Below, piece after piece: positions 40,134 through 52,771 of a stretch of DNA of 63,878 nt; position 1 is the first letter of the stretch; every line of letters starts with the position of its first letter. Source of the stretch: Pavona decussata. Lineage: Eukaryota. Location: NCBI GenBank assembly GCA_977016875.1, contig CDRNST010000008.1, positions 3,720,123-3,784,000 of the forward strand, in the 5' to 3' direction. A program made the translations under genes and the position numbers. The notes beneath the pieces are model-generated. The model was not told the DNA's origin, did no database searches, and saw only the letters and a list, made by a program, of their open reading frames with translations.

Positions 40134-43100
40134 AACTTGAACAATATGGAATAAGGGGTGTACCCCTTCAATGGTTCAAATATTTATCTCATAGATTGCA
40201 GTATGTACAAATTTATTCTGATTGTAAATCAAAAACGATGACTGTATAATGTGGTGTTTCACAGGGATCCGTTTTAGGGCCTCTGTTATTTCTACTGTAC
40301 ATTAACGATATGAAAGTGCATCTACCAAGCTTAAATTCGTACTGTTTGTTGATGATACTAATGGGTTTTTGAATGGTAAAAAGCAAACTTAACTAGTACA
40401 GGAGTTACATGATTAATTAATCAACCTCTCTAATTGGTTCAAGTCTAATAGGCTTTTCTTTTAATATCAATAAAACTACATTTCAGATATATGTGTATTT
40501 TTTTTCTAATAAAAATTAAGAAAAAGAAAACCAATCCAGAAGGAATTCAAGTCAGAATAGTTAAAATAAACATCGATAGAGTCAAATCATTTAAATTTTT
40601 AGCGATTATTATTGACTCTAACCTTAACTGGAACCTTAACTATATCTGCCAAAAAGTATCCAAAAACATAGGGATCATTAGGTGTGTCAGTCATTTTTTG
40701 CCACAAAAGCCTTTTTACTCTATACTATTCATTAGCGTATCCTTCTTTTTTCTATGGTAATATAGTATGGGCAAACTGTTGCCCCTTGAAAGTACTTGAA
40801 AAACACTTGAAAAACACTTGAAAAACACTGGCAACATACCAACTAAATTAAATAGACTTGTACTCCTTCAAAAAAAGGTGATTGGTATAATATTTTTGTC
40901 AGACCGGTAGCACACACTAAACCTCTGTTTGACTCATCTTACAATTTCATCAAAATAATTTTTTATGCGATGTTCACGCACAAATTAACAAAAAATACAC
41001 TTCCAGATATATTTGACATCTTTTGATTACCAACACTCAAATTCACTGATACACGCTGTTTGGAACGTTTTCGCGACGCCAGTATGTCTAATGTGAGCTG
41101 TAAACCGACAAGTGTATTCGACAGTTGTATTCAAACCAGTTCCTGCACACGTGGTCAATTAAACGTTGTGCATCACCTTTTCAATAGCTCGAGTTTCATG
41201 AAAAAAATATTTAATTAGTTAACTGCTTTAGGATTCAAACAGACTCAGCATATCTTTTGTTCCATTCTTGGAGAGTTGATGTACCTTTTGTTGATCCGCA
41301 AACAGCGTCGGTGTTTCCTTCATTGAGTTTCCTTTCAAGGGGAGTTTGCTTGTATTGCCAATCTTAAGTTTAACAATATATCTCTCCACGTGAACTTTGA
41401 ATGTTAAGTAGTTTCTTTTGTTGTAACACTTGTTGTACTCCACGCTGTACTTTTATGCAAAGAGTTCCGACTCAAACAAAGAACTGATGTACATATATAA
41501 GAACCTGAACGTGCATGTGCTTGAAAACCGGTTATGTTCCCGGTTATGTTGTGAGTCAGAATAAATCTGTGCTGGTCTGAGTTTTAATTTTATATTTCAA
41601 TTTAATTTTTTCCAATTATTTTCGTTTCTCCTTGTTTTCTGTTTTCCTTCTGCTATATCTTTCTTATTTTTTCTATTCTACTTAGTTACTTTTCTTATTG
41701 ATTTACTTCTTTTAAAGGGGCACAGTATTAGTTTTACTAGAGGTGCCCCTCTACTCTCCTCTCCGCTATTTGAATTGTATTTTTGAGCTGCGTGTTAGTC
41801 TATGTTTTTAATACCTTCAACTTTTGTATTTTGCGCTTATGTAACAGTAAGAATGGAGAGTATAAAAAAAAAATTTAAAAAAAATGTTAATTTGTTCCAT
41901 GCTGTCTTTGAGTTATAGTTAGCCAGATCCCGCGTACCACAGAAGTTGTGGCGAGCTTCGTTCCTGCGCAAGTGAGTTGCTCTTGAGTTAATTTTTCCCT
42001 CTTGAGCTAATCTCTCCCCCACCCCCCTCCCCCAACCCGTAGTTGTCGCCGAAGTCGTCGTGTTACGTAAAAAGTACTCTTCAACAGTTGAATCACAAGA
42101 ATAGGAAAAATCCATCGTCACAACGTCATTCTGATCATGTTTCTTTCACAAATTCGATGTCCGGGAAAAATGCAATACCCTATACAAGGGAAAGAAACTT
42201 TTGTCGCCGCGGTATTGCAGATTTTATTGTTTTTATACATAAATGGCATCAGGTGCTTAATTTGTTTGTTGCATTTAAATCCCGAACCCGTGAAGCAAGA
42301 CTGAACATTGAGTGTTTGTGCGGGAACTGAGGAGAAAAATTGCTGCCGGTTTCAGTTGCGTTGCAAGTCTGATTTGCGTTTGTTCACTAATTTTTCTATC
42401 GTTTTGTCCAATGATCATTCTTCTCTGCTTCTAAGGTCTTTCAGCAAAGTTTAGGAAAACTTTAGGAATGTACGATTAGTACTGCTCATTTCGTTTTCTT
42501 CCTTAAAAATTGTATGCACCGAGCACCGGGAAAGTTATAATGTTACCCCTGATGTTACTACTCGCGTAAAATCAGCTGATTGTAGCATTCAGTTTTGCAA
42601 ATGATGCCATGCATGCATGTGATAAAGTTCTTATTAACCTTCAATGATAACGTTCACTGTACGCTTCACATTCACACCCTGGTAGCTCAGTCAGTGCAGT
42701 AGAGCAACGGTTTTGGCTATCGTGAGAAACTCTCTTATCTCTGGGAAACACTGTGGGAAGGTCGGGACAGAAATCCCCAGGACGAACAGAATAGGCAGCA
42801 CTTGGATCCAACCTTAGACTTTAATCACTTGAACGTAACCCAGAATGGGATCAGTGTTACCGGCGATCCGGGGACACAGCTGCACCGGGTGTGTTCCGAC
42901 TCACATGTTACACAACGAAACGCGACGCGGAATTACATCACAACCAAAGAGGCCTAATTACAGAACATAAACAAACATGTACCGAGTTGTATTGACAACT
43001 TCTCCACGCCAAGAGAAGATCTTGCAATGAGTCTAAAATGCAAAATTTAAAAGACTTCACCTTCCTATACGGGTTACCTAAGTTGGGGAAAATCCTTTTG

Positions 43101-43959: not shown

Positions 43960-44563
43960 TACTTAATCGCATATACTTATCCGCAATCCGGCGATGGTAA
44001 AATTCCCCAGTACAAGACCAGCCCCCCTCGCCCCGCCAAATATGCCCAACTACCTCCCCACCCCCTCCCCCACCTCTCCGTTCCAGCCCCTTAATCTCAG
44101 ACGGTTAAAAATCCTTCAGCCCGCCCATGGACTGTCTGGGTCAGCTGTACTGTAGGTTTTCAAAAAAAATGTGAAACCCAACTTTGAAAACAAAAATTAA
44201 GCACCCTTTTTTATTCCAATATCGATTTCCAAGGAATGATTTATGTGACGTCGGCCTCAGCACATTGACAGTCTTTGTCATGTTTTCCACGATTTATGTC
44301 GACGGAAATCACGTAAGAGGTTTTTGGCCATCCGCCCGCCTGCCCGCCCTCTCAACCTCAATGCGAATTTTTGCTTGCGTTTTTCGGACATTTCCACCAG
44401 TCCAACCAGTAGTTTGAAATATTTGTACAATGCGTTCACTAAAAGCAAGCCGTATAGTTATCTATCTGTTGGACATAAATTAGCATTTTGCACAACTAAA
44501 GCGACTAAGCGTGGGAAAACGGATTTTGTTGACCAATTACACATCATTTTTCACTTGTCTTAA

Positions 44564-44604
44564 AAGTGTGAAAATGTCGTACAGTACGGCGCCTTCGGGT
44601 CTGC
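44564..44604 (+). promoter_or_regulatory. Candidate BMP-response element (Smad1/5-Smad4 composite) plus T-box-like site, 3' of Gbx
   Basis: AAGTGTGAAAA then GGCGCC-TTCGG-GTCTG (44588-44603); core identical to 50103-50118. Confidence 0.6.
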
Positions 44605-47600
44605 CTGGACTAACGAGCCACAAACTCTTAGCCAAGGTGTCAAAGCTTTAAACTGCTTGCTAAATACATATCGTGGAAATCTTTTTTTCCGTCCGGATCA
44701 GCTCTAGCATGGGCACAAACAATTTTCTATTTCACCCATGTCAAGTACTGCTGATTTTAACCGAAGATCACCGGATGTAAATCCACCGAGATGTTCTGTT
44801 CATTAGGCGACACTCAGGATACTGCCAGACAAAAGCAACCGTTATAAATCAATTGAAGTGACATTAGATTTGCGCGTGATATTTTCCAGCAACAATTATT
44901 TCACAAAGCTTTCTTTTAAGAGTTCCATTTTAGGGCTCACGGCCGTCAATTCGACTTACTTTCTCTCGAAACATTTTAACCTTTAAAGCGTAACCAGCTA
45001 CAGAGGTTTCATCCCTAATCCGAAAATCTACCAATAGCGTGCAGTATCCTGACGGATATTGGAAACCAAACAAACCTTCTTAAAATGTTGCCGCCATAAT
45101 TATTTCAATTTGACAGATTTTATCAATTATCGCCACTAACGATAGGCGAAAATCTGATTAGACGGGAAGCAAGGGCCCCGCCGTGACAGAGAATAGTGTT
45201 TGTGGTTCATGAATGTTATGACTGATGGTAGATTTTTGCAGCCGTTATTTCGTACTCTCAAAAATTTAATTTTATGTTTGTCCATTGCTTCTCAACAGTG
45301 AGCACATAAAATGATTTGCAAGTAACTTCAAAAATACTATGAACTTGAAGGAAACGCAAAACGAGGGAAATATCACGGTACGTTTACCGTGACAATCGTG
45401 TGAAATTTACGGTTATTGAAATCTGTACACCTTATCTGTACAAGACACGGCCAAAGTAAATGTTACTGAGGGGGCTTTCATTTCCGGCTGCCCCAAAGAG
45501 CATTGCAATGCAAGAAAAACATCGTTATAAAAAAGGTTTACAGTTTTATGTGCACTGACTTTTAGTCCAAACAAGATATCTTTACCTCCGCTTTGGCTTC
45601 TCCATTGTGATACTTCCAACTTGTGGGGATCAGAGCCTTTAGTTTCAAAATATTGGACATTTTAACCGAACTTTCCTTCACTGAATCGGTTATTTTATTA
45701 CAGGTTTACAAGGTTTGGACATACGCAAGCGGTTAATGTTTTGTCAAATAACTTCTTAGCTGTTGTACGCTCCTGTGTAATTCTAATCTGTTTATTATGG
45801 CACAATTTGTTTGTGGAATCAAAATAGAAATTGTTGAAGACCTCAAAGAAAAGTGGTTTGCTTTCAATGGGGGATTTAAATAAAAACAGCGTTGGCTGAA
45901 CTTTCTTATTCTCACCGTCGTTTTGTATATCACTCTAAAATTCTGCAATAATCGCTGCACTGCAATAAATCCAATCTTTTTCGGGCAATTCTAAGCGGCT
46001 AACGTAGTTTGCTACTTGTCCAAGAACAAAAAAAATGAGTTTGAATGGGAGAGATGATTCAAACCCGGATAGGTTAACCGGCCTAAAGCCTCAATAGTTA
46101 CCAGCATACATTTCTCCTACAGTACCATTACTTATCAAAGATATGGGCCATAAAAAGGAAGGCGATGATCACTAACGTTGAAATAAGTTTTCTCAACACA
46201 AGGAGGACATTCAGGAAAACATTCATATGATGTCAATATTGATACTTTAAACTTGTTATAATGGGTGCCCAAAGGCCTTTAAATACTCGTGTCACTTTTA
46301 CGAAGTTTTTGGCAAACTTATTACTACTTTCGATCAGTTACCTTTCGGTTGTGTACATATATCGGGTTGAATCATGGTTGGTCGCCGGATTACACATCTC
46401 GAAACAATTTAAGCGCCTGAATTGACGCCTGAAGAGAATCGTGTTCAAGTTATTTTAACCAGAAATCATTATTTTAAAGTCAAACGTAAATAGCGAAACA
46501 TGCAAACCGTTCTCTTAAAACCCAGTGAACAGCCAAAATAGTTATTCGAACGACATTAAAACCAGAGATGTCGACGTTTGTTGTTCTTTGTTCAACTCAG
46601 TAAAATTACGTCCGATAATAATTCCTTAACAACACGTTAAATTACAAAACCGATATTTTAACGAACGATCAGTGCCGTTCTCCTGATAAGCGATAAAATA
46701 CCATAAGGAAATATTTACCCCTTGATCATGTTCAGCCGTATCTTGCTTGTACAAGAACTGACCTTCAAATCTTACGATTTACAAGAAATTGTTTTACACT
46801 TCAACTGTAATTTAATTGTGCATCGAGTGCATATTTTCCCGATGACTTGAAAAAGCTTTATTTATAAAGTCTGCACTAGACCCGGAGTAAAACTCGAATA
46901 AGCAAGTTGCAACAACTACTGTTTTAAATGTTAAAGCTTTGCCAGTTAACTAGTGCACAACAATTTGCCTTTCCTATTTCCCAGAGGGCGAGCTTAGAGC
47001 ACTTCGGATTCAACAACTCGGGTTCTTTAACCACTGATTTCTACTGAGATTTCTCAAGGAAGAAACGCTACAGCCAGTTTCTTCTGAGGTGTGAAGTGCC
47101 AGATTAGTTCTAAATTGAAAAGAATTACTTCTCATTAAAAGATGCTGTTTTCACACCCTCAAAGTTGCCGCAAGGATCCCAAAGCATTATACTGTAGACA
47201 TGATGGCGACTGAGGTGCGAACAGCACACAGCAAAAACACACAGTAGGAATTATAATTGTTGTCGTCTAGGTATATTCGTACCAAAAATGGCGTCGTAAG
47301 GATGAAATTTGGTCCTTAAATACGCTTAAGAAATGCTGAATTTTAATCACGTACAAAAGAGATGAATAGTTTTTCGATAGGCTGAGTTTATTCTAAGTAT
47401 GCGAAAGTAAACGACAAGTCTTTCTTTTAAGGAAGGAATAATTAGTGTTGTCTCGGTTGACCAAACACTATGCCTTGTTTTCATCATTGTCCTGTCTTCT
47501 GCTTCCACGCATTGTAATTTTAAAACACCATTTACAACAAATTGAATATAACAGGCAATTATCCATGCCATATTAGCGACGTGAACAAAACTGACCAAAG

Positions 47601-47750
47601 TAAAGAGAATGCCAAAACACACTAGCACAGTGCACATTACCTCAGACTTTCCATTCGAACAACAGATAATCTTCCATGTCCACAAACCATAATCATTCAA
47701 AACCAACCAAGCGCATTGTCCATTTTCGATAAATTAATAAATTAGCATTC

Positions 47751-48788
<1,038 letters not shown>

Positions 48789-48889
48789 TGTTGGATGTCG
48801 CCCGCCGTCTTCTTTGTATGATCGCACGAGCGGACACGAATTAGTGACTGGCCGAGTCGGTATTGTTTCTTATCGGATTACGCTCTCTC

Positions 48890-49210
48890 TCTCTGGCAGA
48901 CGTTACTAATTACAGGGGCTGGGATATTTTACGTCAGCTACATTCATGCCATTGGCTAATAAATAATTGAAATGACAGGCGAGAGAGGCCACTCAAATTA
49001 CCCTCAGACGGATCACCAGGACAAAAATTCACTATCACTCAGCCCATGGTCAACTGTAAAATAAAGAAATCACTACTCTCCACCAAGCCAATCAAGAAGT
49101 GATCGCGAATAATGAAATGTAATGTCTCTCATCAATCGGGCAGTTTACATTGTTCTTTTATTTCTTGATCGTTCGGGCGGTATTCTCGCTCTGTTGACCA
49201 ATAGAAATTT
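48890..49210 (-). promoter_or_regulatory. Putative Gbx proximal promoter
   Basis: TE-free stretch just upstream of the ATG with CCAAT boxes, TAATTA, TGACGTAA, TGACAG and a (GA)n tract. Motif-level evidence only. Confidence 0.35.
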
Positions 49211-50079
49211 GTTTATACACAAGGTTCATATTGGACATGGGGTTAATTATAGTTGTTTGGCAACAAAACAATGGGAAGGCAACCAAAGTGCTTTTCTTTT
49301 TTTTTTGTGGAAGCGAGGTCTTCTAATTCATCCATATTTTGGAAATTATTTTGGATCGAACTTTGGAAGTGATACAACAAGATTAAAAACAATTAGAGAT
49401 CGTTTTCGACCTTTTTCATTACCAAATTATATTAAGAAACTTTTTTTATGAGTTTGAAAAGTCGTCCTCGTCGACAGCACATCGGCTCAGTCACTTGCTG
49501 GACCGTGGTTCCTTGCGCAACTCCGTCTACATCTCATTGAATTGAATGAACGGAACTTCCGCAAGTAGGCAAGACCATGAATTATTGCCATTGACAAGGA
49601 AGGAAGCAAGATTAATCGAAATTGCCATCGCGGTTGTCGGAAATAACCCTGTCGGTATTTTCCTTGCGTTCCTCTACTTGTTGTTTTGTGGCCTTGTATT
49701 TGTTTTCACGCTTTGTGTGTGTGTAGCAATTATCATTATAATTTTTTCTTCTCTCAAAGCGAGCTTTGTTTTACGCGTACCTCTATCTTTATGGAACCAA
49801 AAGCAAACAAGTCCAATTTATATAAAAATAAAATATTGATTGAATTCTCAGTTCCTTTACACCAAAAATATTCCCGTTTGTAGACGATGTAAAAGGCATG
49901 TGTTCCAGAACAAGGGATAGTAATGGAACCAAAATGTGACAAAAGGCATTTCACTGCAAAAAATGAGACTTCTTTCAATTCGCTCAAAGTTTTTCAAACG
50001 CTGTCGAGAATGTTGCGTCGTGCCTAAGTGTAACTGGACAGACGGATGTGTGAGCGTTGTCACCACGGCTTGTCACCGA

Positions 50080-50119
50080 AAGTGTGAAAAGTTGTTGTGA
50101 GCGGCGCCTTCGGGTCTGC
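50080..50119 (+). promoter_or_regulatory. Candidate BMP-response element plus T-box-like site, 5' of Gbx
   Basis: AAGTGTGAAAA then GGCGCC-TTCGG-GTCTG (50103-50118). Confidence 0.6.
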
Positions 50120-51367
50120 TAGCCCTTGTACAAAGGAAATGAAATCAGATTAACTGGGGCTATCTCTAAAACAGGGAACGGGGAATGGAGGAATGGGGAA
50201 TGGGGAACGGGGAACGGGGAACGGGGAATCTCTAAAAGGGGGAATCTCTAAAAGGGGGAATCTCTAAAATAGGGAATCTCTAAAAGGGGGAATCTCTAAA
50301 ATAGGGAATCTCTAAAAGGGGGAATCTCTAAAATAGGGAATCTCTAAAAGGGGGAATTTCTAGAAGGGGGAATCTCTAAAAGGGGGAATCTCTAAAATAG
50401 GGAATCTCTAAAAGGGGGAATCTCTAAACGGGAGAATCTATCAACAAACTGGATAAATCTAAGAACGTTTTAGAAGTAGAGTTTTTCCTAAGAGACATTT
50501 ACAGCATTTGCTAACAACCAATAATATTATTGACAGTTGTTGTCATAATTACTAGATATATAAGATAAAAATAAATTGTTGTGGTCGCTTGCCGCAATAT
50601 CTTCGGTAGGGGTGGTCTAAAAAAATTATGCCAATCGATACCAAAGGGCCACATACAGCAAGAGAAATCGAATTTCCTACAGCATCTTACTGCAAAACGG
50701 TAAAGATAAAAGCGCAATTGAATCTCTGAATAAGCCGTAGACTCAAAATGACTGGAACTGGAACCGGGCCTGGCATCTGTAGCACGCGTCGACCATCATT
50801 AACTGGACTAGACAGACGTCTTTATGCCTGCTTAAAGCTTATCTAGTGATCAGTTCAAAAATGTGAAATGTGCGTTGTTTGTGTTGCGATTGATCCATCA
50901 GCCCTAATGGCCTTACAACGATGTCTAATAAAAAAGCCCTAACCAATTTCCTTATATGCCTTTCGAAAGTTGCAACAAACGCCCTCAATGTTTTTCAAGA
51001 AAAAAAAGGTTTCACTGGTCAAGGAAAAAATTCACCTTATCTATGATGTTATCACTCAGGTACCAGACATGCTTATCTCCCTGGGATAACGTAGGCCGGA
51101 AGCCACCCAGATTGCACATGCTAAATATGTTTTCATTGTGTCTGGCTGGTTACGTTTCATGGCGTAATTAACAAGACTAGTAATGAGAATATAAGGTTTA
51201 ATAGCGTCTGCTTTTTTATGCCAAAAAGACAAATTCTCTTAGGGTCGGGTCGCACTAAGCGAATTTTTGTATCTTCTAATTTTTGGCGGTCAAATTTTTT
51301 GGCAAACATTTTTGAACTTCCAATTTAAATGGCAGGAAATGGCTGCAAGAACGTGTTGAGATAAGAC

Positions 51368-51622
51368 ATGTCATCCCGACCTTCGGTCGACCTTTTTTCA
51401 AGTCGGTGGTTTCAGGTCAACATGGATAACAATTTCAAGTTTCCATTGGCGTTTGCCAGCAAAAGAAAAAAGCTTGAGGCGTTTGATGGGCTCCCAAAAT
51501 TTAGCTGGGACGAGATTACGAGCCAGGAAGTAATTGGTCAAGGCTCATTTGGCGCGGTGTTTATTACCCAGTATCAGACAACAAAAAAGCCTGCCGAAAC
51601 AGTGGTTGTAAAAAAGCTTTAG
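51368..51622 (+). pseudogene. Truncated protein kinase N-lobe (subdomains I-II) inside the foldback element
   Basis: FSWDEITSQEVIGQGSFGAVF...TVVVKKL is a GxGxFG loop plus a VAVK-like lysine; the ORF ends at the right TIR array. Confidence 0.75.
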
Positions 51623-52200
51623 AGATTTAAGAGATTCCCCCTTTTAGAGATTCCCTATTTTAGAGATTCCCCCTTTTAGAGATTCCCTATTTTAGAGATT
51701 CCCTATTTTAGAGATTCCCTATTTTAGAGATTCCCCCTTTTAGAGATTCCCTATTTTAGAGATTCCCCCTTTTAGAGATTCCCTATTTTAGAGATTCCCC
51801 CTTTTAGAGATTCCCTATTTTAGAGATTCCCCCTTTTAGAGATTCCCCCTTTTAGAGATTCCCTATTTTAGAGATTCCCCCTTTTAGAGATTCCCTATTT
51901 TAGAGATTCCCCCTTTTAGAGATTCCCTATTCTAGAGATTCCCCCTTTTAGAGATTCCCTATTTTAGAGATTCCCCCTTTTAGAGATTCCCTATTTTAGA
52001 GATTCCCTATTTTAGAGATTCCTCCTTTTAGATATTCCCTATTTTAGAGATTCCCCCTTTTAGAGATTCCCTATTTTAGAGATTCCCCCTTTTAGAGATT
52101 CCCTATTTTAGAGATTCCCCCTTTAAGAGATTCCCTATTTTAGAGATTCCCCCTTTTAGAGATTCCCCCTTTTAGAGATTCCCTATTTTAGAGATTCCCC
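51619..52200. repeat. 16-bp minisatellite array (TAGAGATTCCCCCTTT / TAGAGATTCCCTATTT), right TIR arm
   Basis: Directly visible; inverse of the array at about 50224-50440. Confidence 0.95.
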
Positions 52201-52771
52201 GTTCCCCGTTCCCCATTCCTCCATTCCCCGTTCCCTATTTTAGAGATAGCCGATTAACTGGCTACACGCTGTTCCTTTGGGTAATTACGAGAATTGATGA
52301 CATGATTCACTAAAGTATACAACGCAGAGCCCGGACACCATTGATTTGATAATCCCTTAAGCTGTTCCAGAACAAACAGGCATGTTTTGTTACATAACTG
52401 CGCAGGACAAATCGCTCGCGAATCATCTCATTTTTTAAAAAGGTTTTTACTTCCTCGCCAAAGCTCTGAACGAAATACTGGAAAATTGGTAGTTTTATCT
52501 TTCGTCATTGCTGTTCCAGGATTCGGACAACAATAAACAGGAACGGTGTTCTACGATATATCGATAAAATCGTATTTATCTTAACGATTGTACCCGATCG
52601 ATAAGGGAACGATTACAACCTAGGAAACAGTCCGTATCCTCTGCGTTGTTCCACGCAAAACGTCGTTACGAGTTGACAATAACAAATGAGGTCATCATGA
52701 CGGCAGCTTTTGCGATAAGTTCACCAGACCAGGAAAACGGCGATCAAAAACTACCCTGAATGGCATTTTCT

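Follow-up and report, generated by a model that had tools for sequence, protein, structure and literature searches.

Gbx and Hox genes partition the directive axis of anthozoans under the control of bone morphogenetic protein (BMP) signalling, and the DNA that reads the BMP gradient has been mapped as chromatin immunoprecipitation (ChIP) intervals in one sea anemone only. In late gastrulae of Nematostella vectensis, pSMAD1/5 ChIP-seq gave two non-exonic peaks assigned to Gbx, scaffold_58:1033483-1033817 and 1035888-1036222, with summits 2,405 bp apart. Both are positive for the BMP-response element (BRE), and one of them, which ranks with the strongest peaks, coincides in part with an enhancer already published; Gbx expression is reduced in morphants for BMP2/4 and for GDF5-like (Knabl et al. 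2024, eLife 13:e80803). In vertebrates, the ID-type BRE (Id1/2/3), GGCGCC-N5-GTCTG, is BMP-responsive in reporters, and a gap changed by 1 bp in either direction abolishes the response (BMC Biol 2025, 23:79). In Drosophila, two consensus sequences are described: silencer, GRCGNC-N5-GTCTG; activating element, GGCGCCA-N4-GNCV. The subject here is the Gbx locus of the coral Pavona decussata, in a stretch of 63,878 nucleotides (contig CDRNST010000008.1, positions 3,720,123 to 3,784,000 of the forward strand), hereafter the window. Its Gbx gene lies between two copies of an 18-mer, CGGCGCCTTCGGGTCTGC, each of which contains a predicted Smad site with the 5-bp gap. The two copies and their neighbouring motifs are likely to be a pair of Smad1/5-Smad4 cis-regulatory modules through which BMP would activate Gbx. 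Gbx was already known as a direct BMP target; what is new is an instance of the element at the level of bases and deeply conserved.

Two homologous modules on either side of Gbx

The gene between the 18-mers is a two-exon Gbx on the minus strand; the top non-cnidarian matches of its homeodomain exon are Gbx/unplugged. The two exons were searched and aligned one by one, each separately, and the intron is placed at about 48147-48536 by tblastn with the Pocillopora and Oculina proteins. Gbx loci of other assemblies, labelled L below (L005, Pocillopora), were collected through exon-2 protein matches. The features of the gene and of the two modules are given in window coordinates, with the supporting evidence in brackets.

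44532..44618, plus strand: 3' module, a conserved block of non-coding DNA that lies about 3.1 kb beyond the stop codon of Gbx (blastn with L003, L005 and L014; surroundings unalignable).
44554..44559, plus strand: CTTGTC of the 3' module (TGTC core recurring in most copies).
44564..44574, plus strand: partner motif AAGTGTGAAAA, T-box-like, with one mismatch to AGGTGTGAAA (sequence and alignments).
44588..44603, plus strand: predicted Smad composite GGCGCC-TTCGG-GTCTG of the 3' module, ID-type BRE, also a GRCGNC-N5-GTCTG match (kept in L005, L014, L008 and L015).
44604..44614, plus strand: CCTGGACTAAC, block specific to the 3' module (retained in 6/6 3' copies).
47751..48146, minus strand: coding part of Gbx exon 2, with the homeodomain and the stop codon at 47751-47753 (protein matches and tblastn).
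48537..48788, minus strand: coding part of Gbx exon 1, with the ATG at 48788 (tblastn with the Pocillopora and Oculina Gbx proteins).
50069..50157, plus strand: 5' module, proximal half of a conserved block (blastn and alignments).
50069-50074, 50080-50090, 50129-50135 and 50147-50152 (the last on the minus strand): CTTGTC, AAGTGTGAAAA, TACAAAG and TAATCT, sites in the 5' module.
50103..50118, plus strand: predicted Smad composite GGCGCC-TTCGG-GTCTG of the 5' module (kept in 8/8 cnidarian lineages).

The 18-mer is found as exact copies at 44587-44604 and 50102-50119, both on the plus strand, where the first-pass annotation of this DNA had placed them. The distances given there, 3.2 kb 3' and 1.3 kb 5' of Gbx, agree with those obtained here (about 3.15 kb from the stop codon and about 1.3 kb from the ATG). 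In shuffled sequence 0 copies are expected, even when 2 mismatches are allowed. In the 602 Mb assembly, the two copies flanking Gbx are the only matches with at most 1 mismatch; the 18-mer is thus not a transposon fragment or high-copy repeat, and such an origin is excluded.

The resemblance of the two sites extends beyond the 18-mer. CTTGTC begins 33 nt ahead of it in both copies (44554 and 50069) and is followed by the partner motif, whose position is shifted by 1 nt between the copies; the shift is offset by the spacer that follows. The similar spacing announced by the earlier annotation is thereby borne out, as are the differing flanks: outside a stretch of about 51 nt, the two regions could not be aligned with each other. 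Both window copies read GGCGCC-TTCGG-GTCTG, that is, a palindromic GC site, a 5-bp gap and a 3' Smad-binding element (SBE) on the same strand. An order common to both modules (TGTC, ARGTGTGAA, G(G/A)CGCC-N5-GTCTG) is found in the window, Pocillopora, L014 and L015. The strict identity of the two 18-mers is a detail of the lineage, since the Pocillopora and L014 copies differ in the spacer (TTCGG versus TGCGG).

Half-sites, their order, their strand relation and the strict 5-bp gap are identical to those of the vertebrate ID-type BRE. Unlike the latter, the coral modules have other gap letters, lie 1.3 kb 5' and 3.1 kb 3' of the gene instead of close to a promoter, and have a predicted function. 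Two separate modules that share their motif set, order and orientation at one gene also recall shadow enhancers, with an overlapping activity that is putative here.

Conservation at cnidarian Gbx loci

In a tree of Gbx proteins, 13 rows form a well-supported cnidarian clade, which includes the window, L003, Pocillopora, Oculina and the L014 group. L008 with L015 and L009 with L021 are two long-branch lineages within this clade. L012 and L013, whose Gbx falls among bilaterians, are without modules and serve as a loose negative control only. The contigs of L018-L020 end before reaching either module. The BioSample numbers of L015-L017 fall within SAMN12856788-811, which are among the BioSample identifiers of raw metagenomic and amplicon data of Vohsen et al. 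(2020). The 24 metagenomes of that study come from Leiopathes glaberrima, Callogorgia delta and Paramuricea sp., all non-scleractinian anthozoans (Vohsen et al. 2020). Judging from the record names, L015-L017 would be a non-scleractinian anthozoan.

Conservation at orthologous Gbx loci is found for both modules. The 5' module is present in 8/8 cnidarian lineages, always at the corresponding position and antisense to Gbx. None of the eight has lost GGCGCC, the 5-bp gap or GTCT (GTCTG is kept in 7/8), and five gap sequences occur: TTCGG, AAGGT, GGCAT, CGCGG and TGCGG. The 3' module is present in 6 lineages, including Pocillopora damicornis and a probable non-scleractinian anthozoan. Its GC site is GGCGCC in 4 and GACGCC in 2 (L008 and L015); the 5-bp gap is kept in 6/6 and GTCT in 5/6, with the gaps TTCGG, TGCGG, ATCGT and ATCGG. 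When both modules are pooled, the 5-bp gap is found in 14/14 instances and the SBE GTCT in 13/14, and at least 7 gap sequences are represented. The loss is seen in the closest other genus: the 3' module of L003 (13769-13840) and its equivalent in L004 are retained, but both contigs read CTCT in place of GTCT and GTGTCA in place of GTGTGA. Such a decayed copy fits redundancy of the two modules without proving it.

Each copy has private flanks: ACAAAGG-AAAT and AGATTA for the 5' copy, CCTGGACTAAC for the 3' copy. The duplication hence predates these lineages, and their common ancestor already had two distinct copies. Five lineages have 5.3-5.9 kb between the two Smad sites, and L015 has 7.4 kb. 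In the comparison with L003, in which the protein of Gbx exon 2 shows 95% identity, 23 kb contain no more than about six alignable non-coding blocks; given this scarcity, the modules are true phylogenetic footprints. At shorter range, contigs of an organism A, of an organism B diverged by about 5% and of two coral metagenome libraries span both modules; none of the differences lies inside the modules among the 40 listed of the 528 contig differences. Taken as sequence patterns, the modules are probably ancient, paralogous cis-regulatory modules of Gbx.

Half-sites and spacing that are fixed while the gap letters are free are what would be expected from selection on a bipartite protein-binding site. 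The same pattern of constraint is not the one expected of a structured RNA or of a neutral duplicate, and two rival explanations are weighed against it. In the first, the elements would function at the RNA level, for example through a small hairpin with a UUCG loop in a non-coding transcript; CC-UUCG-GG, read from the sequence, is able to form a short tetraloop hairpin. The loop letters, however, vary freely (AAGGT, GGCAT, CGCGG, ATCGT), with no compensating changes in the stem, and a search of 44000-52600 against Rfam gave no match up to E=1, which also counts against a role as RNA. This role is very improbable. In the second, the pair of 18-mers would be a neutral by-product: transposon fragment, recent micro-duplication, gene conversion or chance. 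Their identity within one genome would fit this origin, as would a transposon that begins 39 bp past the end of the 5' copy. Against it stand the presence of only two copies in 602 Mb, the occurrence of both in other genera and orders at the orthologous positions, and the history of the transposon, which was inserted later, is flanked by a target-site duplication of its own and is missing in relatives. These observations refute a neutral origin.

BMP input: enhancers, silencers or other readers

The reading retained here, a BMP-activated pair of Smad modules, would work as follows. Each module has as its core a Smad1/5 GC site, GGCGCC, and a Smad4/Smad SBE, GTCTG, 5 bp apart, about 1.3 kb 5' and 3.1 kb 3' of the gene. 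Upon activation of BMP receptors, a pSmad1/5-Smad4 complex would bind each module. Once bound, the modules would increase transcription of Gbx on that side of the directive axis where BMP signalling is high, and would be partly redundant (shadow) enhancers. Tissue context would come from the neighbouring motif ARGYGWGAA and from further conserved sites. The genome encodes MH1 domains of the Smad1/5, Smad2/3 and Smad4 types, the type being assigned by signature residues that we take to be diagnostic.

The pSMAD1/5 regions of Nematostella Gbx are the closest counterpart: same gene and phylum class, two sites per locus and a BRE motif. Unlike these 335-bp ChIP intervals, the coral modules are defined by nucleotides, form a homologous pair and are traced across anthozoan lineages. 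The dependence of anthozoan Gbx on BMP, on which the first-pass annotation had relied, agrees with the fall of Nematostella Gbx in the two kinds of morphants. The annotation had proposed a pair of shadow enhancers or silencers that read BMP directly with a fixed 5-bp grammar of bilaterian type. Orthologous conservation, the fixed gap and the Nematostella peaks speak for the direct reading; the silencer option has become less likely.

This option is that of Drosophila-type BMP silencers, in which Mad/Medea at GRCGNC-N5-GTCTG would recruit a Schnurri-like corepressor, so that Gbx would be off at the highest BMP and one border would be sharpened. The likeness to the brinker-type silencer (Mad/Medea/Schnurri) is a full match to the consensus: both window composites fit it, and so do the GACGCC variants of L008 and L015. 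The activating element GGCGCCA-N4-GNCV is not matched, since position 7 is T and the Medea site ends with T (GTCT), which is barred by V. The output expected for Gbx is nevertheless activation, unlike that of the Drosophila silencer. Nematostella Gbx falls, not rises, upon BMP2/4 knock-down, and the identical sequence is an activating BRE in vertebrates (Id1-3). Silencers are unlikely because BMP activates Gbx in Nematostella; BMP-activated enhancers are, by analogy with this anemone, the most likely option. A silencer-type match, GACGCC-N5-GTCT, is also found at 41075-41089, further 3' of Gbx; it is probably a chance match because it lies outside every block conserved with other corals.

Alternatively, the conserved elements could be real and their GC-rich and GTCT positions read by other factors, with a coincidental match to Smad sites. 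Additional conserved motifs within the same blocks would be compatible with such readers, as would the genome-wide counts, in which strict sites are no commoner with a gap of 5 bp than with one of 4 or 6. Both half-sites and the exact gap are kept, however, in 13/14 instances while the gap letters vary, and it is difficult to account for this unless the sites are read by a bipartite factor with the same geometry; the Nematostella Gbx peaks are, moreover, BRE-positive. Readers other than Smads are considered improbable.

Several points weigh against a BMP-activated Smad pair. The strict motif is rare; genome-wide it occurs at 73 sites with N5, 73 with N4 and 55 with N6. With no excess of the 5-bp gap over the 4-bp gap among strict sites, the motif alone proves little, and the case rests on conservation and on the anemone ChIP. 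The Nematostella peaks are themselves tied to the coral modules by analogy, at the level of the gene (Gbx) and of the BRE motif. The 3' module is assigned to Gbx by its proximity and by its homology with the 5' module. The loss of GTCT in L003 and L004 hints that the 3' copy can be dispensable. Lastly, we infer binding, activation and redundancy in this coral from the systems compared above.

Many strict sites with repeated spacers resemble repeats or duplicated haplotype contigs. Identical matches are also found across contigs (MH1 exons, e.g. C8:4594768 and C200:1262025; BRE sites sharing a spacer). They suggest uncollapsed haplotype contigs or recent segmental duplicates, by which the genome-wide motif counts would be inflated. 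Homeobox genes were looked for near 20 of the other 71 N5 sites, and none was found in 10 kb on one side, with no control set for comparison.

Partner motif, middle block and surroundings

The first-pass annotation had paired each Smad site with a T-box-like site. The partner motif, ARGYGWGAA, is conserved beside the Smad site in almost every copy. Comparison of eight taxa leaves only four fixed positions (A.G....AA), and the interval to GGCGCC is 6-18 nt. The core of the T-box half-site, GGTGTGA (AGGTGTGAAA), is not found in the BRE modules, which have AGTGTGA, with a mismatch at the first G of the core. In three taxa the motif is GGAAGTG, which we take to resemble an ETS core. Genome-wide, AAGTGTGAA-N8-20-GGCGCC gave 8 matches versus 6 for a reversed control, and a general grammar of T-like site and GGCGCC was rejected on this count. 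The full BRE is present at the two Gbx sites only; the composite is thus specific to Gbx and not a common module.

T-box sites proper are found in a third conserved block, located between the 3' module and the gene.

47062..47250, minus strand: middle block, conserved, at 0.5-0.7 kb beyond the stop codon (83% identity to Pocillopora).
47087-47094, 47150-47157 (minus strand) and 47213-47220: AGGTGTGA, GGTGTGAA and AGGTGCGA, T-box sites of the middle block.
47101-47106: TAATCT of the middle block.
47196-47210, minus strand: GTCGCC-N5-GTCT, relaxed Smad composite of the middle block.

This is the best-conserved non-coding block with respect to Pocillopora. The sites at 47087-47094 and 47150-47157 have perfect T-box cores, two bases separate AGGTGCGA from GTCGCC-N5-GTCT, and the 5' module has TAATCT as well. 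The block may be outside the Gbx mRNA because it lies just beyond two polyA-like hexamers (47392 and 47347). Of the proposed T-box pairing, a conserved partner motif and true T-box sites in a neighbouring block stand; the motif itself is a one-mismatch variant, invariant in part only and at a distance of 6-18 nt. A T-box co-input at the modules is plausible, at clearly less than even probability.

A wider proposal is possible, although doubtful. The pair would be anciently duplicated, Gbx-specific enhancers whose Smad grammar and T-box-type partner have been kept since before the radiation of anthozoan orders, and which, together with the T-box-rich middle block, set the BMP threshold for Gbx along the directive axis. 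If so, they would be among the oldest traceable enhancers outside Bilateria and would give a direct handle on how cnidarians read a BMP gradient; the transposon that splits the 5' block would be a natural perturbation of the enhancer pair. The two homologous Smad modules and the T-box-rich block are candidates at the nucleotide level, short enough for reporter, mutation and deletion work. They also show that selection acts, in corals and their relatives, on the Smad grammar with the fixed 5-bp gap that flies and vertebrates use; this bears on whether Cnidaria and Bilateria share the cis-regulatory logic of BMP axis patterning.

The remaining features of the region are two further conserved blocks between the 3' module and Gbx, in which the Smad composite was not found, and the parts of the interrupted 5' block.

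44959..45160, strand not assigned: conserved non-coding block (conserved with L003, L005 and L014).
45401..45531, strand not assigned: conserved non-coding block (conserved with L003 and L005).
50158..52251, strand not assigned: lineage-specific foldback transposon splitting the 5' block (target-site duplication GATTAACTGG; empty site in relatives).
52252..52395, plus strand: distal half of the 5' conserved block (joins 50157 directly in other corals).

Three other homeobox genes of one paralogous type are found in the window, at about 19491 (plus), 34395 (plus) and 61266 (minus). These paralogues around Gbx are near-identical, with a homeodomain ending in TWFQNRRTKWKKE. The earlier suggestion that the modules might be shared with them was not upheld: nothing connects the modules to the three paralogues.

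A contig from a library labelled as metatranscriptomic RNA (run X19) covers 44804-49596, that is, the entire Gbx intergenic region, at about 5% divergence. A contig that runs across an intergenic region indicates that genomic DNA from a related coral is present in the library, which therefore cannot serve to show expression.

The transposon is an element of 2,094 bp with long terminal inverted repeats (>40 bp). It is flanked by a 10-bp target-site duplication, GATTAACTGG, at 50148-50157 and 52252-52261. In other corals the 5' block is unbroken from window position 50157 to 52252, with an empty site in L003, L005 and L014, and the contig of organism B, a sister species, crosses the empty site directly. 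Contigs from two other samples stop at the junction; the ends of the element are high-copy. The Smad composite of the 5' module lies 39 bp from the insertion point, and the distal 140 bp of the block have been displaced by 2.1 kb.

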